Shown here piece after piece: positions 8,372-47,298 of a DNA stretch of 64,000 nucleotides. Under the pieces are notes generated by a model, which was given only the letters and a program-made list of their open reading frames with translations, was not told the origin of the DNA and searched no databases. Positions within the stretch are counted from its first letter, which is position 1, and each line of letters begins with the position of its first letter. The stretch comes from Mantamonas sphyraenae STR306. Its lineage: Eukaryota; Protista; CRuMs. Where the stretch lies: assembly GCA_026936335.1 (NCBI GenBank), contig JAPMXV010000018.1, positions 186,001 to 250,000 of the forward strand. Reading direction: 5' to 3'. The translations under genes and the position numbers were made by a program.

Positions 8372-10150
8372 ATGGCGACGCTGAGACAGGAAAGCGAAGC
8401 CAACCTGCTGCGCAAGGGCTCCGTCATGCTTGTGCGTGACCGACGCGTGTCCTCAGGCGGCAACAAACCCTTGTCTCGTCTGTACAAACCTGCCGACGAG
8501 CTCGAATCCGACGACGGCGACTCTTCAAATGCCATCGGCCGCTCTGGAAGCCCCATTCTGTCCGCCAATGCTGACCTCGATGGCACTGGAACCACCGTCC
8601 AGGCCAAACATCTCGCCAAAGTCGAAACCGTCACCGTCCAGGACCTCGAACGCAGAGGCCAGATGGCGCCTTTCACCCTCATCTTTCAGGACCCGGACTT
8701 TGAAACCGCCTTCCACCATTATTTCTTTGAAAAGAGCATCAAAATCTGCCGTCGCGCCTGCTACATCTCTCTCGGCGCCTTTCTCCTCTTTCAACTATTC
8801 CAGGTGCGTCTCCCATGCCTCTGTTCCTGCCCTCCCCGTTTCCCGTGCATGACTTTGCTTCCAGCCGTTTTTTTTTGGCCACCGGCTCACACTCTTTTCA
8901 CCCCCCCTGCTTCCCCTCGCTTGCCTTGCCTTGCTTTGCCTTGCCCACCTGTGCGTACACCCTATGGTTTGATGTCCACACAGGTCATCGCAGGCACAGC
9001 GCCCAACACAATCGGCCAGTGGGCCTCTCGCATCGGCGCGGTCGTGTTTGTGCTCCTCCTGATCATCTTTATGACCACCGATCTCTTCCGTCACCACATG
9101 CAGCTCAGTCTGAGTCTGACCCTGCTCATTGTGGGCTTGGGTCTCGTTGGCTCCGCGTACTTCTCCCAGGTCACCAACAACGATGGCAGCCTCAAGACCG
9201 AAGTGCCCATCCTGGCCCTCATCATCTTTTTCACCTTTACATACAACCTGGTGCGCCTGCGCTTCATCTTTGCCGTGGTCGTCACCTGGATCACCGCCCT
9301 CTCCTTTGCCGCCGCGTCCATCATTGTGCACGGCTCCGAAACTGTCATCCTGGTCAACTTGGTGTACATCATCTGTGCCTTGCTCATCAACATGTACGCC
9401 GCCTACTCGTCCGAGCGCTACCTGCGCAACGATTATGTGCTGAACCAGGTCATTGAGTTGGAGAGTGACAAGAGCAACATGCTGCTCAAGGAGATGCTGC
9501 CCGAACACGTCGCCCAGCAGCTCAAGGACGGTGCCCTGGGCAACAGCAACGACCTTGTGGCAGAGAGCTACGACGAGTGCACCATCCTGTTTTGTTCCGT
9601 GGCCGGGTTTGCCCAGCTGAGTGATGACATGACCCCTGCCGACCTTGTGCAGCTCCTCAACTCTGTGTTTTCCATCTTTGACGAGGTGTTGGACAGCCAC
9701 GAGGTCTTCAAGGTCGAAACCATCGCAAACACATACATGGTGGCTGCTGGCGTGCCTGAACGCCGCAGCGACCATGTGCGCCTCATCTGCAATGCCGCCC
9801 TTGACATGCTGCGAGCCATGCGAGGCGTCACTCTCGACAACGGCGCACCCCTCAACTTCAAACTCGGCATCCACACGGGCCCCGTCGTCGCAGGCGTCCT
9901 TGGCCTCAAAATGCCTCGCTACCATTTGTGGGGCGACACTGTCAACACTGCCTCGCGCATGTCCAGCACCACCCAGATCAACCGCATCCAAATGTCCTCC
10001 TCTTCCCACCGATACGTCGCCAACGAGTACCGCTTTGACTCCCGGGGCAAGATTCCGGTCAAGGGCAAGGGCATGATGGAATGCTTCTTCCTCGAGGGTC
10101 CCATCGACGACCACCGTCGGCAGCAGTGCGACACGAACACAACCCCTTGA
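8372..10150 (+). CDS. 6-TM class III nucleotide cyclase A (C2/beta-type half; lacks both metal-binding Asp)
   Basis: ATG 8372, intron 8804-8983. Six hydrophobic helices, helical domain KSNMLLKEMLP, cyclase motifs TILFCSVAGF, FKVETIANTYM, GIHTGPVVAGVLG, MPRYHLWGDTVNTASRM, VKGKG. Confidence 0.9.
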   Translation: MATLRQESEANLLRKGSVMLVRDRRVSSGGNKPLSRLYKPADELESDDGDSSNAIGRSGSPILSANADLDGTGTTVQAKHLAKVETVTVQDLERRGQMAPFTLIFQDPDFETAFHHYFFEKSIKICRRACYISLGAFLLFQLFQVRLPCLCSCPPRFPCMTLLPAVFFWPPAHTLFTPPASPRLPCLALPCPPVRTPYGLMSTQVIAGTAPNTIGQWASRIGAVVFVLLLIIFMTTDLFRHHMQLSLSLTLLIVGLGLVGSAYFSQVTNNDGSLKTEVPILALIIFFTFTYNLVRLRFIFAVVVTWITALSFAAASIIVHGSETVILVNLVYIICALLINMYAAYSSERYLRNDYVLNQVIELESDKSNMLLKEMLPEHVAQQLKDGALGNSNDLVAESYDECTILFCSVAGFAQLSDDMTPADLVQLLNSVFSIFDEVLDSHEVFKVETIANTYMVAAGVPERRSDHVRLICNAALDMLRAMRGVTLDNGAPLNFKLGIHTGPVVAGVLGLKMPRYHLWGDTVNTASRMSSTTQINRIQMSSSSHRYVANEYRFDSRGKIPVKGKGMMECFFLEGPIDDHRRQQCDTNTTP

Positions 10151-10346
10151 GGCCGAAGAAGGCTCCTCCACCGCACGCTCCACCAAACGCAGGACGAGCG
10201 CTCAGAACCTGCCAGGTACGTAAGCATGTCATTGTGCAATGTCATCATCATCATCATCATCATCATCATCACGACGCAATGAACACACCTCAGAGAAATT
10301 CTCACGCATTCCATTCCTTTGCTGCTTTCCTTCTCCCCACCACATC

Positions 10347-10656
10347 TCACCAAAACGCACACCAGCCCACATATCCCTGGCACAGGTTCTCGTGCGATGT
10401 GGCCTGACGAATGAGCCTGTCCACCTGATCGGCGACGGGCAGCACACGCTGCGGGTCGAAATCTCGACCCGTCAGCTTGGCGTTGATGCGCGACACAACC
10501 TCCACCGCCCGCTCGTTCAACACCTCTGGCACGGCCGTCTGGCTGGCATCCGATGCAGCACGCTCACGTCCACGTCCTCCTGCTCCAGCGCCTGCCTGTC
10601 GCATGCCCTCGCCTCCGTCGTCTTCGTCGTCATCTTCGTCATCATCGTCATCGTCG

Positions 10657-10687
<31 letters not shown>

Positions 10688-13600
10688 TGACTCCCGATGC
10701 ATCCGACGGCGTCTCGTCGGTGGCCAGCAGACGCCAGTTGAGCAGCGGATCGTGCACAAACGCCTCCAGCACCGCCATCAGCGAGTCCTTGTTCTCGCGC
10801 AGCACGCGCATGACCGACTCGCACGTGGAGCGGTAATTGCCCTCGATGCCACTCACCTCCATGGCCTTGATCATCATGCGTGTGAGGCGGAACGGCACGC
10901 GTTCGGGGAACTTATCGCGTGTCATGGCCACCTCGAAACAATCACCGAAATCAATGTGCACCACCTTGCCCGTGGAGCGATCCATCATCAAGTTGCTCGG
11001 ATGTCGGTCGCCCAGACCCAGCATGTAACCCACCATGGACATCAGCGACAGCGAACGCGTGTAGTTTGTGCGTCGATCCAGCCACGCCTCACTGTTGCGC
11101 GACTTGAGCCACAGCACTTTGTACAGATCCTCGCCGCTGCTGTTGTCCATCGCATGTTCAAACACCTCCACCTTGTTCAGCAGCGGCATACCGTCGTAGT
11201 CCGGCGCCATCTGCGTCATCAGCCTGTGTTCGATGTTCAACACAATCTTCTTCTGCTCGCGGTGGTCCTTGATCAGCGAGTGCAGCGTGTCACAGTTTGC
11301 AAGCCACCCAATCAGACCACTGTTGGGCGACAACGGCGTCACCGCATACCTGCGGATGGCCAGATGCCTCTGCGACGCGTCCTGGTCCACCTGCAGCAGT
11401 GTGTTGACCAAACCGAACAGTTGCATCACACGCTCGTCCTGACGCAGATCCTCGTGACCCTTGAGCAGGTAATTGTGCGTTGTGCCCTCGCTCGAATCCA
11501 CGCCAATCTTCCTCGGCCGCTGCTTGCTCGTAATCACCTGCAGGTTGCTCTGGAAGCTTCGGATGCGTCGCACCTCCTGGTTCGCCATGTATGTACCGGG
11601 CATGGCCAGACTCATGTCACGCACCGCAAGCAGTGCAGGCGACACGTACTGCAGCTCCAGGCTCACCAGCTGCGGCAGCTGCTTGTTGATGCGTCGGAAC
11701 ACATGGTAGTACAGATCCCACGCTTGGTTCAGATCTGCCATCTTGCCACTGCGCGTGTACTTCTTGCACCACTCCTGCGCCTCTGCCAGATCCCGTCCGT
11801 ACGCCTGTTGGAAAGACACCTCGTGCAGTGTGGTCGGTCCAGCCTCCAGCATTTCATGCAGCGGCGCCAGCGTCTGGAACATTGCCTCCACATTGTGTTC
11901 ACCAAAGTACAGACGCGACGACTCCTCAAGGCCCTCGTGCCACTGTTCGTGCCACAGGATGGCCACACGGATCAGCTCCTGCGACACAAGCAGTGCCTGT
12001 TCGATCAGATTGTCCGCCTTGATACCCTGCATGATGGATAGGGCGCTCTCTTTGCGCAGCACACTCTGCGACTTGCTGGCCACCGTGAGAGGGTACACCA
12101 GCGCCTGCGGGTGCTCCTTGCCCACGCTGGTCAGCAGTTCGTGGATGAGATCACGCACATTCATGCTCGACGAGTGCACACGCGCAATGATCTGAGGAAT
12201 CACCTCCAGCCACGTGTCGATGCTCACCGTGGCAAATCCCGTGCGCAGTTCCGCCTCCACCTCTGCCACGCTGCCGTACTTGAACCACAGTGTCAGCAGA
12301 CGCAGAGTGTCCTGCAACCCGCTGCCGTCGTACAGCGCAATCGAGCGGAAGAAACCGCTCACCGCACGCTGCAGATGCGTCAGCATGCCTGCGTCGTTGC
12401 GCACCACCTCCTCCAAGCCCGCCCCGCCGGCCTGGCCGTGGATGTGTTGCACCACGTCAAAGTTCATCATTGCCCACGCGTGCCACGCCGCATACGACTG
12501 CGGCGCAAGCGTGGTGGCCTTGTCAAACGCCTGCAACACCGTGCCCACCATCTCCTCGCTGTCCAGGCGTGCGTCTGCCAGTTCCATGTGCCACGAGCCC
12601 AACGCAAGGTAGGCGTTGGCCAGCAGAGCAGGATGTTCCTCCTGCATCCCTTCCAGCTTGTCCACAAACGCCTGCATGCGCCCAAACGCCTCCTCCGTGG
12701 CCCCCGTCGCCCACATGTGCTTCATGTACCCAAACTCGGTGGCCGGGTGTGCCTCGGGCACCTCTGCGTCGCTGTCCCCGCTCGCAGGCAAATCCGACTG
12801 GAACAGCGTGCGCAGGAACTTCTTGGACAACTTGTGGCGCCCCTGACGCATGCACAGGTCGGCCATCTCCAGGATGATGTCACGGTCGTCGTCGGACGTC
12901 ATTACCAGCGAGCGCACGCTCAGGATGCTCTGCCACACGTCCAGGTTGCGCTGGCAGCCGTGCAGGCGATCCACCCACATCTTGCGGATCATTGCCTGCC
13001 GTTCCTCGTCGCTCGTCTTGAAACTGATCATCTCCTCCATTTCGGCCAGTTGTTGCACACGCACAGCCACCTGGTATGCACGCTGGTAACTCTCTGCCAC
13101 CAGCGCCGTCAACTTGGTGTCCAGCAGCTGCCTGGTGCTGTCGATGTACTGTTGCGCCTTGTCAAAGTCGTTGTGGTGCAGGTGCAGCAGCGCACGGTAA
13201 AACGCACCGTCCACCGCCGTTTCGGGCATCTCTTCCAGGTAGTACTCCATCGAATCCCACCGGCCCAGGTTCCACGCGGCCGCTGCTGCCAGCGGGGCGA
13301 TGATGAAGCGAGAGTCGGCCTCGGCGGATCGCCACGTGTCCTGCGTCAACTTGGCCAGCTTTTCCCACTCACCCAGGGCATTGAGACAACGCATGCGGCC
13401 CAGGGTGTGCTCCAGGTTCAGCGGCTCCTCCATCTGCTTCGTCTCGTAGCCCTCCAAGGCCTCGTCCCACCGGTTCAGCTTCTCGTACCACGACTCCTTC
13501 AGCTCCACACTCTGCTTCTGCTGTGCAAACAGGAGGACACCCACCGCGGCCTCACTCAGTTGCAGCTGGTTGTTGATGGAAATCAGCGCCTCCACCGTGG

Positions 13601-16600
13601 CCGGGTCGTGCTTGTCGTGAAACTCAATCTCCTTGTAGTGCAGGGCCTTGGCGTACGCGTTGCACGTCTCCGCCAACGCACCCAGCAGCTCCGTTTGGAT
13701 GGGCAGCGGCTTGTCGTCGTGCTCCATAAACTCGGCCAGGTTGAGCAGGGCCTGCAGAATCTCCGGCGGGATATTTTCGCTGGTCATGGCCATTTCCAGC
13801 GACGTCACCAACTGCTCCTGGTAGTTGCTGTACAACTCGGTCCAGCACGACACAAAGCTGGCATTGAACAGCTCGCGGGCCAACGGCGGATACACCTGCG
13901 CCAAGGCGGAGCACGAACGCAGCGTGGGCGACGGCGACTCGCGCAACAGCTCCACACTCAGCCTGCGCATCCACTCCATCCAATCCTCACGTGTCGAGCG
14001 CTGCTCCGCTTGCCATGCCTTTTTCAAATTGGCCTGGTTTACGTGCAGCTTCTTGATGTCACCCACACCCATGCCGCCCATGTCGTCCGTGCTGCTGCTG
14101 CTGCTCTCGTTGGTCGACTCGTTGCTGTCCTGGAACACGTCCGTGGGCAGCGGTTGGTTCTTGAGCAGCTTGGTGACCAGCATTTCGTACTTGCTGTGCG
14201 AGATGCGCTGCGAAGACATCACCTTGTTGACCATGGGCACAAAGATGGCGTAGTCGCTTTGCAGCTGCAACACAAGCGCACACAGCGTCTTGATCGCCTC
14301 TTTGCGCAGCTCGTCGTACTGCACAAACAGCACGCGTGCCAGCGGGTGGATGATGCGCGAGGCATAATCGGCAATGTTCAGCTTGCGGCACAGGCGACAC
14401 AACGTCTTGACCGCGTTCAGGCGCACGTTGAGAGGCGCATCCACCTGCTCCACCAGTTTGACCACCGCCGGGATGACGAGATGCAAGTAGTCTTCCAGGT
14501 TGGTGCCAAATGTTTCCAGGGCACGGAGCACACGCAGCGTGGGCAGGTGCTTCTCGGTCTTGTCGTTGAGCAGCACCGACAGCATCTGGGGCACCAGATT
14601 GGGCAGGTACACCTTGAACTCGTCCTTCAACGCCGTGCTGATCTCCTCCACCAGAGTGATGATGTGGATGAGCAGCGAGCTGTGCCAGTACTTCTGGATG
14701 AGGGCAAAGATGTCGTCCAGGTAGCTGCGGATGTGCTGCTTGACAATGCTCACCAGCGTGCCCAGCTGCTGGAACAGAAACTCGCGGAAGCCGTCGTCAC
14801 ACGATCGCATGACGGAAATAAAGGCCGGCATGATTTGCGGAAGGAAGGGGACACACTTCATGCCCAGGCTCTGGAAGATGTACATCACGGCCTGAATGAC
14901 CAGCTTGTGGTGAGTTTGCAACGACGGGTCGCGCAGGATGCGCATCAGCGCCATGATGACCACAGTCGGGTAGTAGTCCTCTGACGATGGCGTCATACTC
15001 GCCAGCAGCTGGTCGTCGTGCGCGCTGTTGTTCTGCTTGGTGGAGGCACGTGTGAGGGCGCGCTGCGAGTTGAGTTTGTGCTTGTACGGGTCCTGTGCGC
15101 CGATGATGCCGATGACCTTGATGATCTCCCGTCGCACCGTGGGCGACGTCTCCGAGTTGAGGCTCTTCAGGATGATGTCAAGCAGCAGCGGGTACTGGTT
15201 GTACGGCTCGATGACATAGCCCGTGGAGGACACGAGCTTGCCCAGTGTGCGCAGGGCAATCTCGCGCTTGAGCACCGAACTCTGGTCCTGCAGCGTGTTG
15301 ATGATGATGGGCAGCAGTTGGTCCAGGTAGGGCATCATGCTCTCGCCACCCACAAGGGCCAGCTCGCCAAGCGAGGCAAGCACACACGAGGCCACCCCGG
15401 AGGAGCTGTCACGCAGTTTGGGCAGCAGGGCCTTGAGGATGGCATCCACATAGGGTTTGATCAGCTTCTTGGCGGCGCGGATGAGGTGGCCGATGAGCTG
15501 TGCACTCTCTTCCTTGACACGAGAGTCGCCGCCGTACTCCAACTCGGTCAGGAGTTGGATGAGTGTCTTGCGCAGCGAAGGCATGACGTAGGCCGGGTTG
15601 CGCATGGTGAGACGACCAATGACGGAGATGGCCAGCACGCGGTTGTCAAACACCTCGTCGTTGAGGGCAATAAACAGCGAACGCAGGTTCTCGGCCTGGG
15701 CCAGGTAGGTGTCGTACTGCGGATGCAAGGAGGACAGCACGGCGCCACGGATGGAGGGCTCCGGATCGGCAATGCCCGTGGCCAGCAGCTTCTCCAACAC
15801 CTCTGAGACGAGCAGCGCCAGGTGACCGCGTGTGGGCAGCTTCTCGGAGCTGCTGACAAGCAGACGGGAACAGGTGACTGCAGCTTCACGGCGGATGATG
15901 GGCACGTCGTCGTCCAGGAAGGTCATGACGTTGTCGCGCACAAACTCGGTCAGATTGTGACCCTTGAAATCAAAGCTGCCCAGGGTTGTGAGGGCCAACG
16001 AGACGGTGGCCACATCCAGGGTGTCGCCTGCAGCTGTGGTGACCCCAGAGGAGCCACTCTGCAAGCCGGCACGTCCCTTGCCCTTGATGTCCTTGATCTG
16101 GAGGGAGGAGGAGGATGAGCCCGACGGCGTGCCCAGCATCTTGTACGGCGAGTCGGTGAGAATGACGGACAGGCGGTCCAGAAGGCGCTTCTGGATGGTG
16201 CTGAGCAGTTCGGGGATGTACAGGGCCAGGTCGCGCAGGGCGTCGGTGAGGCCTTTGGACAGGGTGGATTGGAACATGCAGTCGAGCAGATCGGCGAGGT
16301 GTTTGCTGAGGCCTGCGCCGACGGCACGTGCGAGCATGGAGATGCAATCGAGGGCCTCGGGACAGTAGGTCTTCTTCTTGGGCACAATGGCCTCCTTGAG
16401 CATGGGCACAAGCTGGTCGAGGTAGGGCATGGTGTTGTTGCCCACGGCGACGGCCATCTCGCCCAGGGAGATGAAGCAGATGCTGCGGTCGGCGTTGTTC
16501 TTGGCAGCAGCCATGAGGAAGTTCATGGCCGTGTCCAGGTAGCTCTTGACAAAGGTGTCGGAGGAGTAGGAGGCCAGTCGAGGCAGTTGCACAATCACGG

Positions 16601-17946
16601 TGCGTTTGGTCATCGTCTTGCCATTCTTGGCCTGCTCCATGAAGATCTCACACACCTCACGGAAGTGGAACTTCATGTAGTCGTTGGTCTTGGCCACCAT
16701 TTCGCCCAGGACCAGGAGGGAGCCGTGCACACTCTCCGAGTTGCCGTTCATGCCCACCATCGCCTCGTTGTACAGCTTCTGGTACAATTGCGTGCGCAGG
16801 CGTCCGTCACGGTTGGCAATCAAGTCCAACCCTTGGGCAAGGGCCTCCACAGCCACCTCGCGGATCTGCTGCTCCTTGTCCCGGATGCCCAGCCACACTG
16901 TGTCGAAAAACTCTGCCACATACACAAAGAAGAGGGTGGGTGCGTTGCGTGCAAGCTCTTTGAGCAGCAACACGGCAGCCAGTCGCTTGGGTCCTTCGTA
17001 GCGGTCTGCCTGCAGCCACTCGAGGGCGCGTTTGACTTCAAACTCCACAAAGTCGGCTGTGAGCGTGCCTCCTGCACGTGCCAGATGGCCCAAGGTCTTT
17101 GCAGCCATCACCATGGTGGGCACGTCATTGTTGGGCAATGTCTGGCGCAGGTAGTTTGCAAAGCGTGTGATTTTGGTTGCGTTTTCGTCAAAATCGACGT
17201 CGATGAGCTCGTCTGGGATTGTGGGCAGGCGGACGACGGGCGGTCAGTTTCGGCACGCGCAGGGCAGCTGACAAGGGCAAACAGAGGACAGCATAGGGCG
17301 CAGAGGGTGTATGGAAGGCGCAGGCATGTGTGGGGAGATGTGGGCATGGTGCTGAGGGTCAGGGGAGAGGAGGAGCGGAGCCACATACCGATGATGAGGA
17401 TGCCAGCCTGCTTCTCGCCAATGTCCTGCGAGTCAACCAGGGCAAAGATGCGCTTGGAGAGGTCGTTGAGGTACTTGGTGAGGACCTCGCCAGACATCTC
17501 GCGTGCATCCTCAACCACCTGTGAGGAAACAGGCATGGGGCAAAGGAGGAGTGGCGGAGGCGTGTGTGAGTGCACCGGAGCCGGGAGGGATCTTTTTGCG
17601 GGTTTAGCCAGGAAATGGACGGGAGGAGGAACGTACGCGCTTGCGGATGCGTGTGGCGACGGCTGCACGCTGCTCTTCGGTTTTGCTGTGTATGGGGCGT
17701 GCGTGTGACGGAGAGTGTGGTGGCCAGGGAGGATGGGTTAACGAAAGGCGAGGCGAGCGAGAGAGGGGAAGAAGAACGCTGGTGATTTGGCGAGTTTTGT
17801 GCACAGGTGGCCATGTGCAGGACGGCAGCAATGGCAACGGAGAAAAGACAGACACACTGGTGTCACACATACGCTTGGACCAATTCGAAGAGCATGGTGG
17901 CAAACGGATTGTCTCCCGAGGAGGAGGAGGAAGACGATCGCGACAT
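10347..17946 (-). CDS. TOR: Target of rapamycin Ser/Thr kinase (PIKK)
   Basis: Exons 17946-17873, 17685-17637, 17518-17389, 17212-10347. HEAT repeats, FAT, FRB (LWHEQWHEGLEESSRLYF), kinase (LLKGHEDLRQDER, GLGDRHPSN, HIDFGD), FATC LCQGYVGWCAFW. Confidence 0.98.
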
Positions 17947-20140: not shown

Positions 20141-20234
20141 GTGAGGATTTCGTTTGCCTCGGTGGAGGCACTCCATCCTCCTTCCTTCACACACACACAC
20201 ACCCACACACACCCACACACACTGCACTGCAACG

Positions 20235-21245: not shown

Positions 21246-21280
<35 letters not shown>

Positions 21281-33567: not shown

Positions 33568-33598
33568 CGGTGGCTGTTTGCTCACACTGGCGCAGGTG

Positions 33599-37200: not shown

Positions 37201-39263
37201 CATTGCAAAAGGCCGGTGTGTCGTTTGCAGGGTGCCAGCTTGGAGAATGGAGCCGGCTCGAGCGGCACGGGGAGGAACGCCGCTCGTGGGACGAGTGGTC
37301 CTTGCATGTACGGAATCTGTTCCAGACGGAGTATAGCCAGTACGAGGGTGTCCTCCAGGGTCTGGACGAACGATACTCGGATCGCCAGTTTCTCAAGAAG
37401 AAGGTGATGAACGTGGAGGCGAGCGATGCGCATTTGCGGGCATACGTGCAAACCGGCCGACAATTTTCCAGCACGTCAAAGGCGTTCACCATCACGGGGA
37501 CATTGTGGCAGTATGGGCTGTCCCGGCTGTTCGACAGCTGGGCAGAGTCCAACAACGAGGAGATCCGGGTGTGCACGAAGGCAACCGCAACCAAAACATG
37601 GGAAGCCGTGTGTAGCGACATCAACACACACCACAGCATCTTCATGTCCGTCATGAAGTTTGAGGAGTCGAGGTTGTGGCGCCTTCCTGCATTGACGGGC
37701 AGGCAAAGGGACGAGTTGATTGGGGTAGAGACGCGTTCTCTGCTTTCGCTGCTCCTCTTGTGGCCAGATTTGGTGAGCTGCATGCAAACCAACACAATCA
37801 GGCAGTGGTCCGGCGGTATTACGGTCCAACACGGACAGCCGCTTCGTTTGGTCGTCTACCGCCCGGCCACACTGGACCACGTCACGTCGAGCGGAGAGCT
37901 CCGTGAGATTTTGCGGCCTCTGAGCTCATTGAAAGCGGCAATCGTGGAGGCGGAGAATGAGGTGTCCGGGGCAGCTGCCGAGAAGCGTGCCAAGATGAAG
38001 AAAGCAGAGGAACAGAAGAAAGCAGAGGAACAGGATAGGAAGGGCAAGAAGAAGAGGCGCGCGGAGGAGGAGAGCGAGGACAACCAGTCGACACAAGCGC
38101 CGTTGCAGGACACCAAGAGAGCCAGGCTGGATGAATCAGGCGAGGGTGACATTGTGGACATGGGAGAGAGCAGCGAGCCGATGGAAGCGGCCAAGGAACC
38201 ACAGAGTGACGACCGAGAGGACAGGGCCACGACACAGCACGCAGGCAGCAAAAGCCACTCCCAGTGGAGCAAGGATCGACAGCGACAGCTGGTGAAAAAG
38301 CTCGTTACTGTGTGTACCGTGGCACACGTGTGTGGGCTGGGCAAGGAGGTTGAAGACGCACTTGGCCAGCAGCTCGGGTTCCGGCACCTGGGGAAGCCGA
38401 AGCGCAACGGGCGCATCGACGTGCGCTTCAAGAAGAAGTTTAAAGTGAGGAATCACGATGAGGCTGCAAGGTTGATCGCCAAAACAGCCTTCTTGGTCAA
38501 CGACATCGGTAGGAAGAATGACACGCTGGTGGTCTTCTTCTGGCACAAGGGGAGATTGAGGCAAAGGAAACTGCCCTTCCCCTCACATCGAGACCTCAGG
38601 GAAAAAATGCATCTGCACCGACTTGCCAAGGTTGAGAAGGAGGACGAGCCGAAAAAGCACGGGCAGTTGCGGCGGTACGGGCGTGACGTGCTCGAGAGAC
38701 ATGTCCTGCGCACGGTAAGGTCCGTGAGGAACGTGATGGACGGATTTGGCCTGCACAACATGATCTACCTTGCGCAGTCGAAATTCTACGGAGGTTTGTC
38801 CCTCAGCACGCGCATCCATCACGCTTTCGCAAGACACATGATCTGGGCGGACGTGGCAGAGTGGATGACTTCCAGTACATGCATCTGTGGAGGTGGCATT
38901 GCACACCCGCATGGGTTCAGTCTCTCGAGATGGGACAGAGTTGTGACTTGCCCTCATTGTGCCATCAGCCGCAACCACCACAACAAGCACACGCTGATGT
39001 ATCACATGGCCCACGACGCCGGAGGAATCACGCCCCTCTCCGACAGGGACGTCAGAGGAGCACAGGGGATCCTTGTAAGGCAGCTGCACCTGTGGCTGTT
39101 TGGCAAAGAGCCCCTGTCGTTCTCCAGCCGCAATCCCAAAAAGAAGAAGCAAGAAACGGCAAAGGCGCTGGTGCTGGAGAAACTCAAGTCACGAAGGAAG
39201 GCGGTCGAGGGTCCACAAGATCATGGGATGGTGGTTGAAGAGGGTGGAGGTGGGGATGAGTGA
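34236..39263 (+). CDS. Giant Fanzor/TnpB-like RNA-guided RuvC endonuclease (1675 aa) with N-terminal SAP motif
   Basis: RuvC-I FLVNDIGRKN (D1423); RuvC-II Glu just before the Zn finger in VAEWMTSSTCIC (E1542); second Zn pair VVTCPHC; RuvC-III DRDVRGAQGI (D1605); SAP LTVEALKALLKDVGANRQGGKDTLLRKA; basic NLS-like runs. Confidence 0.8.
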   Translation: MEDELQQLVEQVPRLRSAQEVDGHIELRYTRPADVPEQQTSEYVLVGEDGIPEDGEDDEDDGVHYVSTEDVKGLTVEALKALLKDVGANRQGGKDTLLRKATESVSVLKWQEWQEKRCKVDSLVTEDQKALADRGEGGEQANVPTAENLIKVLGRFKKETLEEVILAYKRIWGEPKESSDTESSSSSSSSSSGSGGGGHAPSRNVHPFFASVTLSRLKKDAVVKTLGRMVEEQLATHDGVVNVARALQQQGEQGQRRAVQRTEELFNAPSHADYDNETIKDMVCECDGIVVDCNVIGVEHIDRGGDAEKPLQLNAAGVALTQQLQEILQASDQPVCFVRTVASLQERFEGRNCSIGEQKQFRRDATGYLTTSSLPDPNSKHRKKAKVLAAREAAPALGLARLRTVVADGREACLAQMMSLPGKLAVVSSNAKTETMMYSKGLQQDLLVVSVVKPRVFPKLAEVDGDAVPGTVGEEDEEMVMEKNEEEDGEKGEVMVVERNENDEMDAVVPDAMVLVEEVAVEPEEMMEGNENEMDAVEADGMVLVEGEDEEEGGGAGKWWVRTMQLHDTRRVFHATVVTGMYAGMTAPTWTPMERKEIMSTLMGDHPERLRTLSLMARKRKQLGHNLTLLQAQTVQDMYGAEIHEGWTPAQYVGVLGELDTALMKHHLADAGVFHARGVLYNFAAPLSEWMTYMQVPNEQQVKQAMATDLAHVQIVQDDGTTRPVKAHDITPHDFVCPDNKSVFITMREAHSTQQQAKEESAEVGSVSMDKREHEQDVPLAHDGEQMEVSHSVDGAGEEEVHNTVGKLLRRVAHLKTELDHHVKDPATLLRHKEIHEVERAQANSHTASQPVVGAPDLLTRFADDLCSFLDKVKKVVVDGINNTIRQGTTSVVPSEADVASAAERVRPAWLIGDRRALTWDMLPAVHKWCTSELRADMTKHHVAVRFGEVLLECMRQTTEEKTSEFFVEVATAVVSAHLAFTMEGTKRALQKAGVSFAGCQLGEWSRLERHGEERRSWDEWSLHVRNLFQTEYSQYEGVLQGLDERYSDRQFLKKKVMNVEASDAHLRAYVQTGRQFSSTSKAFTITGTLWQYGLSRLFDSWAESNNEEIRVCTKATATKTWEAVCSDINTHHSIFMSVMKFEESRLWRLPALTGRQRDELIGVETRSLLSLLLLWPDLVSCMQTNTIRQWSGGITVQHGQPLRLVVYRPATLDHVTSSGELREILRPLSSLKAAIVEAENEVSGAAAEKRAKMKKAEEQKKAEEQDRKGKKKRRAEEESEDNQSTQAPLQDTKRARLDESGEGDIVDMGESSEPMEAAKEPQSDDREDRATTQHAGSKSHSQWSKDRQRQLVKKLVTVCTVAHVCGLGKEVEDALGQQLGFRHLGKPKRNGRIDVRFKKKFKVRNHDEAARLIAKTAFLVNDIGRKNDTLVVFFWHKGRLRQRKLPFPSHRDLREKMHLHRLAKVEKEDEPKKHGQLRRYGRDVLERHVLRTVRSVRNVMDGFGLHNMIYLAQSKFYGGLSLSTRIHHAFARHMIWADVAEWMTSSTCICGGGIAHPHGFSLSRWDRVVTCPHCAISRNHHNKHTLMYHMAHDAGGITPLSDRDVRGAQGILVRQLHLWLFGKEPLSFSSRNPKKKKQETAKALVLEKLKSRRKAVEGPQDHGMVVEEGGGGDE

Positions 39264-39465
39264 GTGTGAAACCTTCCACACGTGCTGTGTGGCATCAGGG
39301 CAAACAACAACGATGATGAACGAGGATCTGCTGGGACCACTTTCACGTGCAGTCTCTCAGATAGTTTATCAGTGGCCAAGTTTACACGACGCTGCGTATT
39401 TCGTTGTTGCTCCGCTGTTGTGCACAGCACAGTGGAAACAACAATGCCGTGCGACGTTCTTGTCG
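39264..39465 (+). ncRNA. Candidate omegaRNA scaffold plus guide (boundaries inferred)
   Basis: Lies 3' of the Fanzor ORF and runs through the right end. Hairpins CCACAC/GTGTGG (39276-39292) and TTGTTG..TCCGCTGT/ACAGTGGA..CAACAA (39404-39444). No expression evidence. Confidence 0.45.
39419..39444 (-). repeat. Right terminal inverted repeat
   Basis: TGTGCACAGCACAGTGGAAACAACAA. Confidence 0.85.
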
Positions 39466-39483
39466 CTTGCGATGCGATCCACG

Positions 39484-39864
39484 TCAACCCATGCGCATGG
39501 AACACTTGACACCCGGCGGACAGTTGCCGTCGCCCTGAGAAAGGTAGCGCAGCTTCTCCGCGGGGGACATCTGGCGCAGCACGGAGTTGGGATTGAGCCA
39601 GGGCTCGAGAATCAGGGTCTGGAAGCCCGAATGAAGGGCCACAAACACCACAAACGTGACCAGGTATTTACAGAGGAGGAACCAAAACATGCGGTTGCTC
39701 TGTTCCTCGTCCAGACGCACCACTTCTTCGTCGTCGCTGGATTCGTCCGAGTCCTTGCTCTTTCGCCGCCTGCGCCGCACGGCACGCGGTTCATCGCCGT
39801 CGCTACGACTACGCACGGGTCTACGACGCAATTGGACAGTGTCCAGCCCGTCGTTCTCGCTCAT
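39484..39864 (-). CDS. Small hypothetical single-TM protein
   Basis: ATG 39864 after an A/C-rich leader; charged N-terminus, TM FWFLLCKYLVTFVVFVAL, host-like codon usage. Confidence 0.65.
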   Translation of the reverse strand: MSENDGLDTVQLRRRPVRSRSDGDEPRAVRRRRRKSKDSDESSDDEEVVRLDEEQSNRMFWFLLCKYLVTFVVFVALHSGFQTLILEPWLNPNSVLRQMSPAEKLRYLSQGDGNCPPGVKCSMRMG

Positions 39865-40088
39865 TGCTGTTGTTTGCGGCCAGGCAAGGGGTGGGGTTGG
39901 TGTGGCAGCGTTTGATGTGGCGTGAACACCGCTCTGCTCACTCTGCCCAGAGGGAAAGGCACCACCCACTAAAGTCCATTGCTGCTGGGTTTGCCAACAT
40001 GGCATCCGCAGAGTGTAAGACAAGCGCGAGAGCAAAGACGATTCTCCAAGCACAAAAACGAAACGGGTCCACTCAAAGCTCATTGGAT

Positions 40089-40505
40089 TTACTCAGAGGT
40101 GGTGTTCTTGGCAACCTGGTTCAGGCGGGTGAAGCGAGCCAGAACCTTGCGCTTGAGATCGGCGCGGTAGGCGGAGCCAGCGGTCTCGGCGGCCAGGGTC
40201 TTGGCAATCTTGCGGAAGCCCTTGCGCTTGGCGTTGAGCTTGAGGTTGCGGTTGCTGCGCGCAGGGGCCTGGATGCGGTTGCGTTTGTACAGCTTGAAGG
40301 TGAGGTCAATCACAAACGGGTTCTCCTTGGAAGCGGTCATGCCCACGGCCGTGCGGTTGGCCAGACCCGAGTTGACAAAGCTGTTGACGCCAACAATGTT
40401 GTTGGGCTCAGCAGTCAGCCTCTGGCCGTTCACCAGCTTGCCCTTGAGGTAGCTGTTGTTGTTGCGGGTCAGGGCCCAGATGACATTGGGGGAAGTCGTG
40501 CTCAT
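40089..40505 (-). CDS. RPL28: 60S ribosomal protein L28e
   Basis: VIWALTRNNNSYL, EPNNIVGVNSFVNSGL, YRADLK..LAR motifs. AG acceptor just before the ATG suggests a 5'-UTR intron. Confidence 0.92.
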   Translation of the reverse strand: MSTTSPNVIWALTRNNNSYLKGKLVNGQRLTAEPNNIVGVNSFVNSGLANRTAVGMTASKENPFVIDLTFKLYKRNRIQAPARSNRNLKLNAKRKGFRKIAKTLAAETAGSAYRADLKRKVLARFTRLNQVAKNTTSE

Positions 40506-41287
40506 TTCTGCGAGGGAGGATATTGGCAAACGGGCGACGACGATTTGCACACAGGGCGCCGCGCAGCACGTATGAGTGTGAGTGGGACTGTGTCGACTGG
40601 TGTGCAAGGTGAGGACGGCATGTGTGCAGCAGCTGGGCTGCAGCAGGAGCCACGTGGGTGCGTGTGGTGCGCGTAGGCTTGCCCGACGCAGCCGCAGGTG
40701 AAAGCGGGCGGTGGAAAAAAAGCGCATGCGCTGCAGCAGAGGGGCAGGCCACACGCACGCACGCAGGCACACACGGGCACGACAGACAGCGTATACGATA
40801 CACAGGACACTCCAGTGGACAGTGGCCATGCGCATGTGGCTGTACATGGCCGTGTGCGACGCCGGAGAAGGGCCACGTGCCTTGCAGGCGCGAGTGCATG
40901 CGCGACAACATCACTTTTCGGTGCGCTGCATGACGCTGTGCCGCTTCTGTGTCCATGGCATGCGTCGCACACGCTGCTCTGTGCAAGTGCCTTGCCTCTC
41001 GTGTGTCTGTGTGCATGTGTGTGTGCGTGTGCACCGTGTACGGCACGCGGAACGGCGGGGCCGAGGCGCTGCTGCCCTGTAGCTCCCCCTTTTGTGCACA
41101 CCCACGTGCACACACAAGGGTCACGTGCACATGTACGCGCATGTGTCTGTGTGTGCGTCTGTGTGTGTGTGCACCTGCTGCTGCTGCATCGATACGGTCT
41201 GTGTGGGCACGTACCTCTGTGGTCTGTTTGTTGGCTGGCGGAGCGGGCGCAGGCTCGGTCGCAGCCAGTTCAACCGCCGGTGCCACA

Positions 41288-42604
41288 ATGGACGACTACT
41301 TCAGTGCGGCAGACACGTCGAGGCAGGTGGAGGAGAAGGAGGATGTGGCACTGGACTGCAGTGTGCGCCAGGGAATCGAACTCGAACTGGATCCCGTGGC
41401 GGACATGGGTGGGCACGCAGAGTATGTGTGCAGGGCTGTGGTGCGTGGCAAACTGTTGTTTAGCGTGGCCCACGACGGTGTGTTGCGCGTGTGGAACGTG
41501 GACAGCGAGTCCATCGAGTCGCACGCGTGTGTGCTGGCTCACAGGCTGCCTGCGGCGGAGTTGCACGGCTTGGATGTGGACCCGCAGTGCACCCAGGTGT
41601 TGGTGGGTGACAACGACGGCGGCGTATATTGGGCCTCGTTCAACGCCACTGCTGCCGTCATGGATGCAGGCAACAGCAGTGGGAGCAGCAGTGCCATCAA
41701 ACAGCTGTTTGCCGGACGTGTGTGCCAGCAGGCCATCAGCACGGTGCTCTTGGATTCTCACGAGCCCACCCTGGCCTACTGTGTGGCCGACGACGCCCTG
41801 TTGCACCAGGTCAGCCGAGATGGGGTGGTGAAGAGTGCAGATCCGCTGCACGAGGGCGAATTGTATGCGCTGGCCCAGAGCAATGACGGCCAGACTCTGT
41901 TTACGGCGGGCACAGATGCCAAGATTGGCATCTGGCGTGTTTCCGGCCAGGCGGATTCCGCCCCGCAGGCCCTTGCCTGTATCGAACACGTGGTGACGTC
42001 GGCAGTGGCCGATCTGCTTGTGGACAGCCGCAATGTGTTGTGGGCAGCCTGTGACGGCGGCCAGCTGGCGTCGCTGCAACTGGACGGAGCCCACTGTGTG
42101 GCCAGCTGTGTGCGCACGCTGGAGGGCCAGCTGGACCTCACAGCCCTCGACAGCGCCCTGGTGTGTGTCACAGATGAGGGAAAGCGCATGGAGGCATTGG
42201 CAGTGCGCACGGTGGGTGCTGTGGCTGTGTTCCAGCTGGGCGACGACGAGCAACCCATGTGGACGCAACTGGTCTCGTATGCGGAGGAACACTCTGCAAG
42301 CACGGTGCTTGCCTTTGATTCCAATCTGTTTCTGTACACTTCCTACGACGACATGCTGCTCGTGTATGATCTGGTGCCGCAGCGTGAACTTGCCGCCCTC
42401 ATGGGCCACTCCCTGGACGACTTTGTCCACGGGCCCCTCGTCGACGAGATCATCCTCGACGAAGCAGACATGGCTGAACTCATGCAAGGCATGACCATGG
42501 GCCAAGTGGACGAGGATGTGGAAGACCTTGTCGATGACGATGATGATGACGATGATGATGATGAGGATGAGGATGAGGATGAGGAGAACAGCAGCGCCAA
42601 ATGA
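41288..42604 (+). CDS. WD40-repeat protein with acidic C-terminal tail
   Basis: GHAEYV..LFSVAHDGVLRVWN, LHEGELYALA..LFTAGTDAKIGIWR repeats. Confidence 0.8.
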   Translation: MDDYFSAADTSRQVEEKEDVALDCSVRQGIELELDPVADMGGHAEYVCRAVVRGKLLFSVAHDGVLRVWNVDSESIESHACVLAHRLPAAELHGLDVDPQCTQVLVGDNDGGVYWASFNATAAVMDAGNSSGSSSAIKQLFAGRVCQQAISTVLLDSHEPTLAYCVADDALLHQVSRDGVVKSADPLHEGELYALAQSNDGQTLFTAGTDAKIGIWRVSGQADSAPQALACIEHVVTSAVADLLVDSRNVLWAACDGGQLASLQLDGAHCVASCVRTLEGQLDLTALDSALVCVTDEGKRMEALAVRTVGAVAVFQLGDDEQPMWTQLVSYAEEHSASTVLAFDSNLFLYTSYDDMLLVYDLVPQRELAALMGHSLDDFVHGPLVDEIILDEADMAELMQGMTMGQVDEDVEDLVDDDDDDDDDDEDEDEDEENSSAK

Positions 42605-42638
42605 ACCACCCCAACACCACCACAGAGCACCCGTCACG

Positions 42639-45076
42639 ATGTCGTCGTCCTCATCCTCGTCGTCGTCGTCGTCGTCCTCGTCATCATCGTCCAGCAGCAG
42701 CTCGGGAGGGCCCACGTGGATGCTGCAGCCGCGTGTGATGAATGCAGAGAAGCGGATCAGTGAAGACCCCTACGACAACGAGGCCTGGTCCCTCCTGCTC
42801 ACCGAGGCCAGCAAACAGGACATTGCAGATGCACGCGATCTCTACCAGCGCTTCCTCGACGTCTATCCCACCACCGCTCGCGTGTGGAAACAGTATGCCG
42901 AGCACGAGGTGCGCGGCGGCCATGTCGACAACGCCCAGCAGCTCCTCCAGCGTGCCCTTCCCCTTTGTCCAGACATTGATCTGTGGTATGTTGACTTCCC
43001 TCCCCTCCCCCCTTCCCCCGCAAATGGCTGCACACCACACACACATTCGCGCACATGTTCCCATGTGTGCCATGGTGTGTTGCCCGCACACGTCACGTCT
43101 CGTCTTCCGCCTTCGCCCTCCCACTCACCGCCGCCAATTCCCCCCCCCGTCCACACCCGCAACACACAACGCCCCCCCTTCACACACACAGGATGTTTTA
43201 TCTGCGCTTTGTGCAGGCGGTACACAAGAGCGACGAGGAGGAGTTGGACAACCACATGCAGGAGGCGTACACGTACGCGTTGAAAAACGTGGGCCAGGAC
43301 TTTCTGGCCGGCGCGCTGTGGAACGAGTACGTGGGCTTCTTGGCCAGCAAGAAGACGGAGAGTGCGTTTGAGGACGGCCAGAAGTTGGAGATGCGACGCA
43401 AGGCCTTCCAAAGCGCCATTGCGGTGCCCACCTCGCACGTGGAAATGTTGTGGAAGGAGTACGACGCGTTTGAAAACTCGCACGGCAGCGCCCAGCTGGC
43501 CCAAGGCTTGATTGCAGAACACAGCAAGCGATACATGTCCGCACGCACCTGCGTGGCCGAACGCAAACTGCTGTACACAAACATCAACCGCACACTGTGG
43601 GCACGGCCTCCGTGTGGACAGGCCAACGAGACGCAACAGGTGGCGGCGTGGCATCGGTTGCTGGAGTTTGAACGCAGCGACCCGCAGGGTCTGGCCAGCA
43701 GCGCACCCGACCAGCTGCGCACTCGCATCGAGTATACATACCGGGTGGCACTGATGTACATGCGCCACTACCCCAACTTTTGGCTGCAGTATGCCATGTA
43801 CCTGTGGCAGGAGCACGCCGACGGGGAAGGCGCCCTGGACGTGTTTCAACAGGGCAGCCAGGCCATGCCGGACAATCTGTTGCTTCACTTTGCCATGGCC
43901 GACTGGTTGGAACAGCGCAAGATGATCGAACAGGCGCAGGAGGTGTACGAGAAGCTGCTGGACGGGCCTGCAGCAAACAACGCCCTCGTGCACATCCACT
44001 TTATGATGTTTGCACGCAGGTGCAAGGGTGTGCGTGCCGCACGCGTGGTGTTTTCGCAACTGCGCAAGCGTGACACGTGCAGCCACCAGGTGTGGGTGCA
44101 CGCTGCCCTCATGGAATTCTTCCTCACCAAGGACGCAGGCATTGCCAACCGCATCTTTGAGGCAGGCCTGAAGAAGTTTGGCAGCCAGCTGGAGTTTGTG
44201 GCCAGCTACGTGGACTTTATGCAGCACCTCAACGAGGAGAACAACATGCGTGTGCTGCTGGAGAAGCTGCTCAACTCTGCACCCAAGGACAACCTGGCAC
44301 ATCAGCAGCGCATCTGGGACATGTATCTGGAGTTTGAAAAGATGCACGGCGACAGCAGCGCCATCACAAAGACACAGAACCGATACCACGAGTTTGTGGG
44401 CGACGGCGACCCCACGGGCACGTTGACCCTCATCAAGCGATACCAGATGCACGACATTACTCCGTGCGACGACCAGCTCGTCGACGTGTACAAGAGTGTG
44501 GCCATGATCCACAGCAAGGTGCTACGTGCACAGGGCAAGAGCTCACGCATGCTCAACCAACTGCAAATCCCCGGTGGAGGCGTCCTCAAGCTGCCCAAGA
44601 GCGAGTACGTGACCCCTGTGGCCGACCAGCTCACTCCCTATCCACATCCCGAGGCTGCCAAGTTGCTGTATCGGCCCCCTGCCAACATTGTGCCTGGCTC
44701 TATCAACCTTACGGGCATCAAGACGTTTGTGCCGCCCCGCCTCATTGATTTTACCATGACCCTGCCGCCGTCGCGTGCCATGCAGGGGTTGCCCGTGCCC
44801 GACGCAGACAAGCTGATGCAATTGCTGCTGGCCATGCCACTGCCCTCCACCGTGTACCAGGAGCAACAGAGCGAACGTCAACGCCGAGGTCTCAAGCGCA
44901 CCCGAGCCGACATGGGCCAGGGGGCAGGCGACGACAACGAAGTGGAGTTGGGAGAAACCACCACCAAGGACGGCCTCAAGCCACGCAAGGGCAAACGCAG
45001 CCGAGCAGGCACCGATGTCTTTCAGAAACGGCACAAGGAAGAGGCCCGTCTCGCGGCCATCCAAGGGTTCAGCTGA
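42639..45076 (+). CDS. CSTF3: Cleavage stimulation factor 77 kDa subunit (Rna14/Suf, HAT repeats)
   Basis: Intron 42986-43191. PYDNEAW, ARDLYQRFL..YPTTARVW, LWKEYDAFEN, FARRCKG, AALME, IFEAGLKKF, C-terminal DVFQKR. Confidence 0.92.
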
Positions 45077-45174
45077 CGAGTGGAAGAGAGAGGAAGAGGC
45101 AATGCACAGTTGAAAGAGTTTGTTTTCAGATGATGATGATGATGACAATGATGATGATGGATGAAGAACGAGGC

Positions 45175-47298
45175 TCATTCGTCCTGGGCAGGCTCGACAA
45201 TCTGCGGGATCTGTGGTTTGGAAGGACCACGTGCGCGTGAGCTGCTGGATTCAGACGAGGTGACAGTTCCGGGCAGATTGACAGCAGCGTCGTCTGCGTC
45301 GCCTTCCTTGTCGTCGTCGTCGTCGCCCTCGACGCTCTTTGGCGACGGAGTGTCCTGCTTTGCGCCACGTCCGCCATTGTCGTTGTCGCGTGGTGTCACG
45401 GGTGGTCGCTGGTCCACCACAAGATAGGTGGTGATTGGTTCCGAGCCTCCCTTGGGCACAAAGTCGCGCTCCTCGAGCTCATAGTCGTCAGCGCGGTCGC
45501 AGTTCATCAGCTCGTTGTAGGCCTCCTTGCTCAGCTGCACGCGTCCTGCCACACTGTTGCTCTCCATCTTCTCTGCATAGTTGACCGTTTCTCCCCACAA
45601 AAAGTAGCGGGGCATGCGCAGGCCGATCACCCCGGCCACCACAGTGCCTGTGTGCACACCCACACGGATCTTCAGCGTCTCCCCGGGATACTCTCCGGCA
45701 TGCATTGGCCGCGTAAAGTTCAGCTTGGCCATCACGCGTTGCATATCCAGAGCCATGTCGACCACACGTGCTGTATGGTCTTCTTGCGGGTCCGGCAGAC
45801 CCCCCACGCACTGCGAGTCGATGCACACACCGCGTGTCAGCCACACACACACACAGCACTTGTAAACACACACGCACACACACACACGCTTCGCACACGT
45901 ACCATGTATGCATCGCCGATGGTTTCGATCTTGTACACGCCGTGGGTGTCTGTAAGAGCGTCAAACTTGCTGTACACCTCGTCCATGAGGTCCACCAGAT
46001 CGGCCGGCTTCATCGACGCAGCCAGCGATGTGAAGCCCACCACGTCGGACAGCAGCACCGTAACCTAAATGAATGAGTTGCACAGCGATGTCAGAGTTGA
46101 GGGATGGAGAGGGGACGGATGGCGACAAGGCAGCGCGGGAAAAATTGTGTGTGTGCGTGTGTCTGGGAAGAAGAACGCGGGAAAAAAAACGCACGTTGGA
46201 CACTTCTTCGGCAGTCTGTGTGGCACCACTCTTCATCTTTTCGACGACAGTGTGAGGAAGCATGGCGTAGAGGAGGGCCTCGCTCTTGTTGTGTTCGAGG
46301 GCGGCGCGACGCTGGTTGAGGTAGTCCTTGCGCAGATAGAGCTCGCCCAGATAGCCAGCGAGCATGTTCATGGCGATGGCCACGACAATAAACAGATTGT
46401 GCTCGATGTACACTTCCTCGGACACAGACTGTGTCTCGATCTCCAGCACGTAGTAGACGGCTTCAAAGGTGCCGACGGCCAGGAGGGCCAGCACCGAGGC
46501 GTACACAAAGCGCAGGCGGGGCACAAGGAAGCAGAATACGATAAAGAGGGTGATGAAAATGATGCCCACCGATTGACGGAACAGGGAGATGAGGGAAAAT
46601 AGGACGCCTGAGCAGACAAAGACGGCCAGCAGGTAGCTCTGCATGTTTTCCAGAAACAGGTCGGAGTAGGTGAAGCCCACAAAGATGCCCAGGAGAAGAA
46701 CCACAATGGAGTTGAGGATGATGACCTCGGTGGTGACGCTTTGGTCCAGCAGCTGCACCAGGAAGAAGAGGATGACCACCGCCTCGGCCACAGCCGTTGC
46801 CACACGCACCTGCGACAAGGAAATGGTGGCATGGTGCACAGCAAACGAGGCTTCCAAGGCCGGGTCCTTGAAGTGCAGAGTTAGAGAGTTGATGGTTGCG
46901 TTTTCCAGCTGCGTGCGCTCTTCGCTGTCGTTCATCAGAGACGTGAACTTGTCGTACGACCGCTTGGGGTCCACATCCTCCATCTCCATGTCCTCTACCT
47001 CCTTGTCCTTGTTCTTGCGCAGACCTTGGAACAACGTGGCTGCTCTGGAGCGCACCCGTGATCGGTGGTCGTCGCTAGACGTGCTTTTGCCGGAGCGGAT
47101 GCCGCGGCTGCTGCCAGCCGTTTTTCCACCGCGTGACGATTTGCCGTCGTCGCTCCCCTCGCTCGAAGGCGCCGTGGCGGCCATTGTCACACGCTTCGGC
47201 GACGACGAACTGCGTTCCATCGCCGGTGACGATCGACTTGCCGCCAACTGCTCCGGCTCGGGAGAGTCGCGCAGGTATTTCGCAGCTGTGGAAGCCAT
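45175..47298 (-). CDS. 6-TM class III nucleotide cyclase B (C1/alpha-type half; both metal-binding Asp present)
   Basis: Exons 47298 (or 47355)-46195, 46064-45903, 45810-45175. Six TM helices, KSEALLYAMLP, VTVLLSDVVGF, YKIETIGDAYM, IRVGVHTG, MPRYFLWGETVNYAEKM. Confidence 0.9.

Follow-up and report, generated by a model that had tools for sequence, protein, structure and literature searches.

Two cyclase genes on one contig

We analyzed a 64-kb window, that is, the whole stretch from position 186,001 to 250,000 of contig JAPMXV010000018.1 of Mantamonas sphyraenae STR306, a free-living marine bacterivore of the CRuMs group. Two genes of this window, here called A and B, each encode a protein with six transmembrane (TM) helices followed by a helical linker and one class III cyclase domain. 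The catalytic residues of the two proteins are complementary, and A and B are probably the two subunits of one membrane guanylyl cyclase. The window is eukaryotic, with short GT..AG introns and ~59% GC across its whole length; the published genome has 25.06 Mb in 78 contigs and 59.19% GC (PMC10492846).

A preliminary description of this DNA had placed gene A on the plus strand with the limits given in Table 1. These limits were borne out, and the gene also contains a predicted in-frame intron that the description does not mention. As this intron carries no stop, the open reading frame (ORF) looks uninterrupted. Excision of positions 8804-8983 gives a protein of 532 aa in which TM1 is restored over the junction: this segment lies below the hydrophobicity threshold when the intron is kept and above it once the gene is spliced. 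At the same junction, the spliced protein aligns without gaps to bacterial and eukaryotic homologues.

The locus of gene B on the minus strand was likewise confirmed; the start at 47298 that had been proposed for it is only one of three candidate ATGs (47355, 47298, and 46935), and the ORF of Mantamonas plastica begins at the last of these. Gene B is read in three exons, and the Pfam PF00211 profile runs unbroken from exon 2 (profile positions 9-62) into exon 3 (63-181). Two short, near-identical contigs from one metatranscriptome match the 3' end of the gene and contain no splice joints. External searches with the two proteins, and the fold prediction for B, were performed exon by exon, and the joined proteins were used for local alignments and trees.

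Three trivial explanations for the locus were rejected. Bacterial contamination is ruled out by the introns in A and B, the eukaryotic neighbours, and a GC content equal to that of the genome. A single mis-split gene is ruled out by the opposite strands and the 35 kb of separation, and decay of A into a pseudogene by its intact frame and by a Pfam score that is the highest in the genome.

Table 1. Features of the window, with positions counted from its first letter
Feature	Position	Strand	Remarks
Gene A	8372-10150	+	ATG 8372, stop 10148-10150; one in-frame intron
Gene A exon 1	8372..8803	+	ORF; cytosolic N-terminus, F.D..FE..F motif before TM1, start of TM1
Gene A intron	8804..8983	+	180 nt, in frame, GTGCGT..CAG, pyrimidine-rich, no stop; predicted from sequence
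Gene A exon 2	8984..10150	+	end of TM1, TM2-TM6 (to ~9400), linker, cyclase domain, stop
Gene A helical linker	9401-9556	+	contains KS..LL..MLP
Gene A cyclase domain	9557-10099	+	Pfam PF00211, E 2e-57
A Ser349	9596	+	replaces metal Asp 1
A Glu389	9716	+	kept
A Asn393	9728	+	replaces metal Asp 2
A Lys437	9860	+	replaces C1 Arg
A His458	9923	+	kept
A Asn465	9944	+	kept
A Arg469	9956	+	kept
A Lys504	10061	+	kept; positions span 9596..10063
Codon-repeat tract	10180-10400		His run (+), Met run (-)
TOR kinase gene, complete	10347-17138	-	FAT, FRB, PI3/PI4-kinase, and FATC domains
CstF-77/Suppressor-of-forked gene	43055-45076	+	HAT repeat; convergent with gene B
Gene B	45175-47355	-	three exons, two phase-0 GT..AG introns
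Gene B exon 1	46195..47355	-	disordered Ser/Arg-rich N-terminus, F.D..LE..F motif, TM1-TM6 (~46824-46351), start of linker
Gene B intron 1	46065..46194	-	130 nt, GTGCGT..TAG; junction identical in M. plastica cDNA P0123
Gene B exon 2	45903..46064	-	54 aa; contains LLSDV and IGDAY; Pfam PF00211 E 7.6e-17
Gene B intron 2	45811..45902	-	92 nt, GTACGT..CAG, GT-repeat-rich; junction between IGDAYM and CVGGLP, same in M. plastica cDNA
Gene B exon 3	45175..45810	-	remainder of cyclase domain (to ~45418), acidic C-terminal tail, stop; Pfam PF00211 E 1.2e-30
B metal Asp394	46046-46044	-	exon 2
B Glu434	45926-45924	-	exon 2
B metal Asp438	45914-45912	-	exon 2
B Arg490	45666-45664	-	exon 3
B Phe511	45603-45601	-	exon 3
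B Asn518	45582-45580	-	exon 3
B Lys522	45570-45568	-	exon 3, position of the transition-state Arg
Metatranscriptome contigs	45308-45529		3' end of gene B

Catalytic residues of A and B are complementary

Eight positions were read from a profile alignment, in the order metal Asp 1, base residue 1, metal Asp 2, C1 Arg, base residue 2, Asn, transition-state Arg, and Lys. The signature of A is S E N K H N R K; that of B is D E D R F N K, with a degenerate PKGG and no KGKG Lys. The full set of bacterial type (both Asp, the C1 Arg, both base residues, Asn, the transition-state Arg, and Lys) is present in neither protein.

When A was aligned to the solved AC5, its Ser fell on the first metal Asp of the C1 domain, and its Glu, His, Asn, Arg, and Lys fell on the corresponding residues of the C2 domain. 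The C2 domain of AC5 was also the best solved-structure stretch for A, which scored higher with the beta subunit of soluble guanylyl cyclase (sGC; 116.7 bits) than with the alpha subunit (101.2 bits). For exon 3 of B, the best stretches were the C1 domains of AC8 and AC9, and the C1 domain of AC8 has a Lys in place of the transition-state Arg, as does B. Judged by these alignments, A is C2/beta-like and B is C1/alpha-like.

The preliminary description had stated that A lost both metal Asp and the C1 Arg and keeps Glu/His, N...R, and KGKG, that B keeps both Asp and the Arg and has VNYAEK, RYFLW, and PKGG, and that this represents a C1/C2 (alpha/beta) division between B and A. All the motifs that it quoted were found, the alignments to the solved AC5 and AC8 put these residues on known catalytic positions, and the signatures and alignments agree on the division.

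A and B share membrane and linker architecture

Hydrophobicity analysis of A gave six segments over the threshold. In B, five segments exceeded it and TM5, which lies just below, was assigned by eye, giving six helices. The AlphaFold model of B exon 1, computed from a 25-row alignment, has a predicted local distance difference test (pLDDT) score of ~90 over residues 140-380 and displays six membrane helices, of which TM6 extends into a long helix. A Foldseek search with this model returned AC8, AC9, and AC5 as top matches, all of them weak (E > 0.001); the top 14 rows, none of which reached E 0.001, also include the bacterial ImcA and Cya. This ranking of membrane cyclases is consistent with B carrying a membrane cyclase anchor, without being proof of it.

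The two proteins have the same layout in sequence. Before TM1, A has the motif F.D..FE..F and B the motif F.D..LE..F, which align with a two-domain cyclase gene on contig 21 of the genome (C21, described below) and with bacterial 6-TM cyclases. Both then have LRF after TM4, YLR.DY after TM6, and KS..LL..MLP in the core of the linker, so that the common layout of six helices and helical linker that had been proposed from these motifs is found complete in each protein. The linker core reads KSNMLLKEMLP in A and KSEALLYAMLP in B and corresponds to the core of the cyclase-transducer element, an element with a conserved S..L/MP core in the linker of class IIIa 6-TM cyclases (PMC9552081). Scores with Pfam PF00211 (cut-off 21.9 bits) were 194 bits for A, 62 bits for exon 2 of B, and 107 bits for exon 3 of B. 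In both proteins six helices stand right before the catalytic domain, as in class IIIa 6-TM cyclases.

Relatives of A and B in other organisms

A was searched against 1.84 billion proteins, considering relatives of 73-679 aa and, in addition, those of all lengths among the best 150. The best length-matched relatives are 6-TM cyclases with 36-40% identity; the named ones are bacterial, and all keep both metal Asp. The signature of these half-size matches is D K D R D N R K in 97 of 120, and the others keep both Asp. When no length limit was applied, the best relatives of A were two-domain eukaryotic cyclases, the named ones being from dictyostelids (GCA-type proteins of Polysphondylium and Synstelium), Achlya, Platysulcus, and Chloropicon.

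Complete signatures were obtained for 123 two-domain matches, and 103 of them have Glu in the first domain. In all of these Glu-type proteins except three (100/103), the first domain lacks the metal Asp and keeps Asn..Arg, and the second domain has retained Asp, Asp, and Arg but not Asn..Arg. In the dictyostelid proteins, the signature of the first domain is E E N K/R H N R K, which differs from that of A at one position. The Glu/His pair previously ascribed to the Dictyostelium GCA type is indeed seen in the first domain of P0126 and P0127, two dictyostelid proteins of this type. Dictyostelium GCA itself has been shown experimentally to be a 12-TM guanylyl cyclase (PMC8684759).

For B, a second species of the genus could be compared. 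The spliced M. plastica cDNA P0123 is 68% identical to B over 456 aa, with identical exon junctions, and carries D, E, D, R, F, N, and K at the catalytic positions, the C1-like set being conserved. Since the same split is found in 100 of 103 Glu-type relatives and the set of B is kept in a second species, the complementary pattern of A and B is not due to chance. An isoform of this M. plastica transcript, P0121, is 66% identical to exon 1 of B and retains intron 1. Beyond the linker it continues into a short out-of-domain tail and stops, leaving a 6-TM anchor without a cyclase domain, and it could be either assembled unprocessed RNA or a real truncated form.

A and B resemble bacterial 6-TM cyclases in both parts: their catalytic domains are 46-47% identical to bacterial ones, and their membrane parts score 72 and 57 bits. 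The anchors of both proteins are still recognisably like bacterial anchors, which is said not to be the case for animal cyclases (reviewed in PMC9552081). In the ESM Atlas, we found two purely eukaryotic clusters of half-size, single-domain proteins (399 and 454 aa), mostly from Chlorophyta, which come as close to A in score as bacterial clusters do. A half-size eukaryotic cyclase is thus not unique in itself, and more complementary pairs could be hidden in these green-algal clusters.

Cyclases encoded elsewhere in the M. sphyraenae genome

The Pfam cyclase scan covered the whole assembly (25,061,354 bases, 78 contigs) and gave 35 cyclase-domain matches, from about eleven two-domain genes and a few single-domain ones. 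The top score of the genome, 197.8 bits, belongs to the cyclase domain of A; as the best match of all in spite of its inability to bind metal in a homodimer, A does not appear to be decaying. The first base position is Glu only in A, in B, and in both C21 domains; among the 6-TM cyclases with a single domain, this holds for A and B alone. As for other half-cyclases of the genome, the scan revealed no further half-size one of Glu type among its 35 matches, five weak ones of which lie outside the inspected set. A and B are each other's best matches in the genome, in the membrane part and in the catalytic part alike, with 39% identity in the catalytic part and 33% over 444 aa.

The C21 gene (contig 21, ~93.9-99.5 kb; L006:117-3486 and L020:1-2313) encodes a Glu-type cyclase with 12 TM helices. 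The first domain, with the signature V E E Q R N R K, is A-like/C2-like, and an intron interrupts it; the second domain, with D E D R H H S, is B-like/C1-like and has an insertion of ~60 aa. An acidic, Ser-rich linker of ~450 aa separates the two domains. C21 is the fused counterpart of A plus B and the sole other Glu-type cyclase of the genome scan.

The remaining single-domain cyclases are degenerate, except for C62 and C44, which are full ATP-type enzymes from a distant clade; C34, C55, C59, and C40 are apparently dead cyclase-like domains with degenerate signatures. Among the cyclase loci (L002-L030), the two-domain genes show both orders of specialisation, the C1-like domain coming first on contigs 19 and 11 and the C2-like domain on contigs 45, 1, 20, and 21. 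In one gene, on contig 7, both catalytic sets are nearly complete (D K D R D N K and D K D R D N R K). On contig 40, two near-identical cyclase-like domains (L025 and L026, at ~23.9 and 26.8 kb) lie ~3 kb apart with D D D R K V R, and a third copy resembling them is found on contig 59 (L027). These copies are probably pseudo-cyclases of one family that seems to have duplicated recently.

Relation to the halves of 12-TM cyclases

We compared A and B with the separate halves of fused cyclases, each taken with its membrane and catalytic parts. First halves scored higher with A than with B, in P0124 (218/188), P0135 (194/132), P0127 (157/120), and C21 (173/152). Second halves scored higher with B than with A in P0124 (245/189), P0135 (180/149), and C21 (178/148); for the second half of P0127, A and B tie.

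In the whole-half maximum-likelihood tree (40 rows, 443 columns), A groups with the first half of the Achlya protein (bootstrap 89) and B with the second halves of P0124 (79) and C21 (70), both on short branches. A tree constrained to have A and B as sisters is worse by 16.7 log-likelihood units but is not rejected by the approximately unbiased (AU) test (p 0.16). The pattern of the 12-TM GCA type, with a C2-like first unit, a C1-like second unit, and Glu at the base position, is found in A and B, with moderate support from the whole-half tree. The scores and the whole-half tree favour a placement of A with the first halves and of B with the second halves of eukaryotic Glu-type 12-TM cyclases. 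Because of this grouping, the pair would be either the product of a fission or a lineage that was never fused.

A putative heterodimeric guanylyl cyclase

Most likely, A and B work only as a pair and are the two-gene, unfused form of a Glu-type 12-TM cyclase that related eukaryotes make as one chain. The obligate heterodimer proposed in the preliminary description, equivalent to an unfused 12-TM cyclase, is thereby supported at the level of sequence. We infer that the two proteins physically pair, and it is reasonably probable that together they form one membrane guanylyl cyclase. Each subunit would be a class IIIa half-cyclase in which six helices are followed by a coiled-coil linker, continuous with TM6, and by one catalytic domain. 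Pairing between the anchors and between the linkers would set these domains head to tail, as within one 12-TM chain. One complete pocket would form at the interface, with B giving the metal-binding Asp394 and Asp438 and the phosphate-binding Arg490, and A giving the base-reading Glu389/His458, the transition-state residues Asn465/Arg469, and Lys504. The mirror pocket, formed by Ser349/Asn393/Lys437 of A and Glu434/Phe511/Asn518/Lys522 of B, would be dead in catalysis and may have a regulatory role. The substrate is likely to be GTP, given the Glu/His pair common to A and the dictyostelid GCA-type proteins.

Several points weigh against this model. The two genes do not form a cluster: a distance of 35 kb that includes TOR and other genes separates them, and they are read from opposite strands. 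A homodimer of B might have some activity, since B retains the Asn and its Lys is a conservative replacement of the transition-state Arg. Although B has an ortholog in M. plastica, the search gave nothing above 50% identity to A (73-679 aa, and all lengths among the best 150); the data set for M. plastica is a partial one by its own description (PMC10492846), and this absence is for that reason weak evidence. The architectures of the other genomic cyclases were read from 3.5-kb loci, and five weak cyclase-like matches lie outside that set. Finally, trees of the catalytic domains alone have a weak backbone and do not separate the scenarios, A and B as sisters giving an AU p of 0.44.

This last result bears on a tentative alternative that keeps the heterodimer and gives it another history. 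A and B would be sister paralogues derived by a lineage-specific duplication from a bacterial-like 6-TM homodimer, possibly after transfer, and the C1/C2 division and the Glu would have evolved in parallel with the 12-TM family. The AU test rejects this neither for the catalytic domains nor for the whole halves; for the catalytic domains, a quick free search even missed a better tree, which was found with A and B held together. The two proteins are moreover most similar to bacterial 6-TM cyclases in both catalytic and membrane parts, and they are mutual best matches in the genome. Against a sister relationship, the whole-half tree is better by the 16.7 units given above when A and B are apart, and the fused proteins of four lineages tell A from B in the expected order. 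The shared Glu and the His/Phe at the second base position also fit the fused family. Given the spliceosomal introns and the place of the genes between TOR and CstF-77, any transfer would have to be old.

It is improbable, in our estimation, that A and B are pre-fusion survivors, that is, the copies of a duplicated bacterial-type 6-TM gene that divided the work and were never joined. If this were true, the division of labour would have preceded fusion, and Mantamonas would keep the intermediate predicted by the duplication-and-fusion model, of which no living example is described in the literature searched.

It is also unlikely that A is a non-catalytic pseudo-cyclase that acts without B, as a membrane receptor, a scaffold, or a regulator working through its linker and dead domain, with B being a weak homodimer or having another partner. 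Such a role would be in line with the several apparently dead cyclase-like domains of the genome (C34, C55, C59, C40), with the residues that B keeps (both metal Asp, Arg, Glu, and Asn, with Lys for Arg), and with an ortholog in M. plastica having been found for B and none for A. However, A keeps Glu, His, Asn, Arg, and Lys, which matter only beside a metal-binding partner, and loses only residues that a partner can supply. The same split is the rule in its fused relatives, and a dead, unconstrained domain is not expected to be the best Pfam match of a genome. In addition, class III homodimers are crippled by loss of the transition-state Arg and the KGKG Lys, and a B homodimer would have neither.

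That A instead pairs with another donor of the metal site, such as C62 or C44, and B with another C2-like partner, is very unlikely: C62 and C44 do carry complete D-K-D-R-D-N-R sets, and the five weak matches outside the inspected loci leave room for other partners, but C62 and C44 belong to a distant long-branch clade of ATP type (Lys/Asp) and have no match at E<=0.01 to the membrane part of A or B, the genome scan gave no other C2-like single-domain 6-TM protein for B, and in membrane and catalytic parts alike the best match of A is B and that of B is A.

The model of A and B as an unfused 12-TM cyclase would have consequences for the history of these enzymes. The 12-TM membrane cyclases are thought to derive from a bacterial six-helix cyclase through duplication and fusion (PMC9552081), and this view has so far been drawn from a comparison between the homodimers of bacteria and the fused enzymes of eukaryotes. 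In the literature searched, we found no description of a natural eukaryotic two-gene pair split into a metal-site half and a substrate-site half. In such a pair, each half can be separately expressed, mutated, and tagged, which would be useful for studying how anchors recognise each other, what they sense, and the role of the dead second pocket. Because Mantamonas is a free-living flagellate on a deep branch (CRuMs), the pair is also relevant to the cyclic-nucleotide toolkit that early eukaryotes possessed.

Neighbouring genes

The complete TOR kinase gene begins ~200 bases past the end of gene A, on the opposite strand, and has a long Asp/Glu run near its C-terminal third. The codon-repeat tract of Table 1 starts just 3' of the gene A stop, in the short spacer between gene A and TOR. 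On the other side, the CstF-77/Suppressor-of-forked gene ends ~100 bases from the 3' end of gene B.

Comparison with known systems

The closest known systems are the dictyostelid GCA type (P0126 of Polysphondylium violaceum and P0127 of Synstelium polycarpum) and the wider Glu-type 12-TM family (Achlya, Platysulcus, Chloropicon, and C21). As in A and B, the class IIIa catalytic domains of these proteins are preceded by 6-TM blocks and helical linkers. Their first unit resembles A in lacking the metal Asp and in having Glu with His/Arg/Lys, Asn..Arg, and Lys, and the signature of A differs from the first domain of P0127 at one of the eight positions. Their second unit has the Asp, Glu, Asp, and Arg of B. 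B keeps the Asn and has Phe, whereas most Glu-type 12-TM second domains have His. The main difference is that the members of this family are single chains, whereas A and B come from two genes.

With Rv1625c/Cya of Mycobacterium tuberculosis and other bacterial 6-TM class IIIa adenylyl cyclases, A and B share the half-size layout and the LRF and MLP motifs. The bacterial enzymes are homodimers with two active sites (PMC9552081). They carry the full D-K-D-R-D-N-R-K set; in contrast, A and B each lack part of it, have Glu in place of Lys, contain introns, and are encoded on a eukaryotic chromosome.

The proposed heterodimer also resembles animal sGC, which consists of two gene products, alpha giving the metal site and beta the residues for the base and the transition state; of its two pockets, one is live and the other dead. 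However, sGC is soluble and has haem-NO, PAS, and coiled-coil domains, whereas A and B are 6-TM membrane proteins. A membrane guanylyl cyclase made of two gene products is known from another microbial eukaryote: chytrid RGC1/2 and NeoR are active only as heterodimers (PMC7655827, PMC10622942). Their membrane part is a rhodopsin and the partner genes stand head to head, whereas A and B have a 6-TM anchor and are unclustered. The isolated cyclase domain of RGC1 is active alone (PMC10622942), unlike what is predicted for A, which is unable to bind metal. Finally, mammalian AC1-9, which are C1/C2 pseudoheterodimers, share with A and B the fold of anchor, linker, and core and the C1/C2 division of labour; they are single chains with the C1-like unit first and are ATP-specific (Lys/Asp), whereas A and B are two chains with Glu/His.

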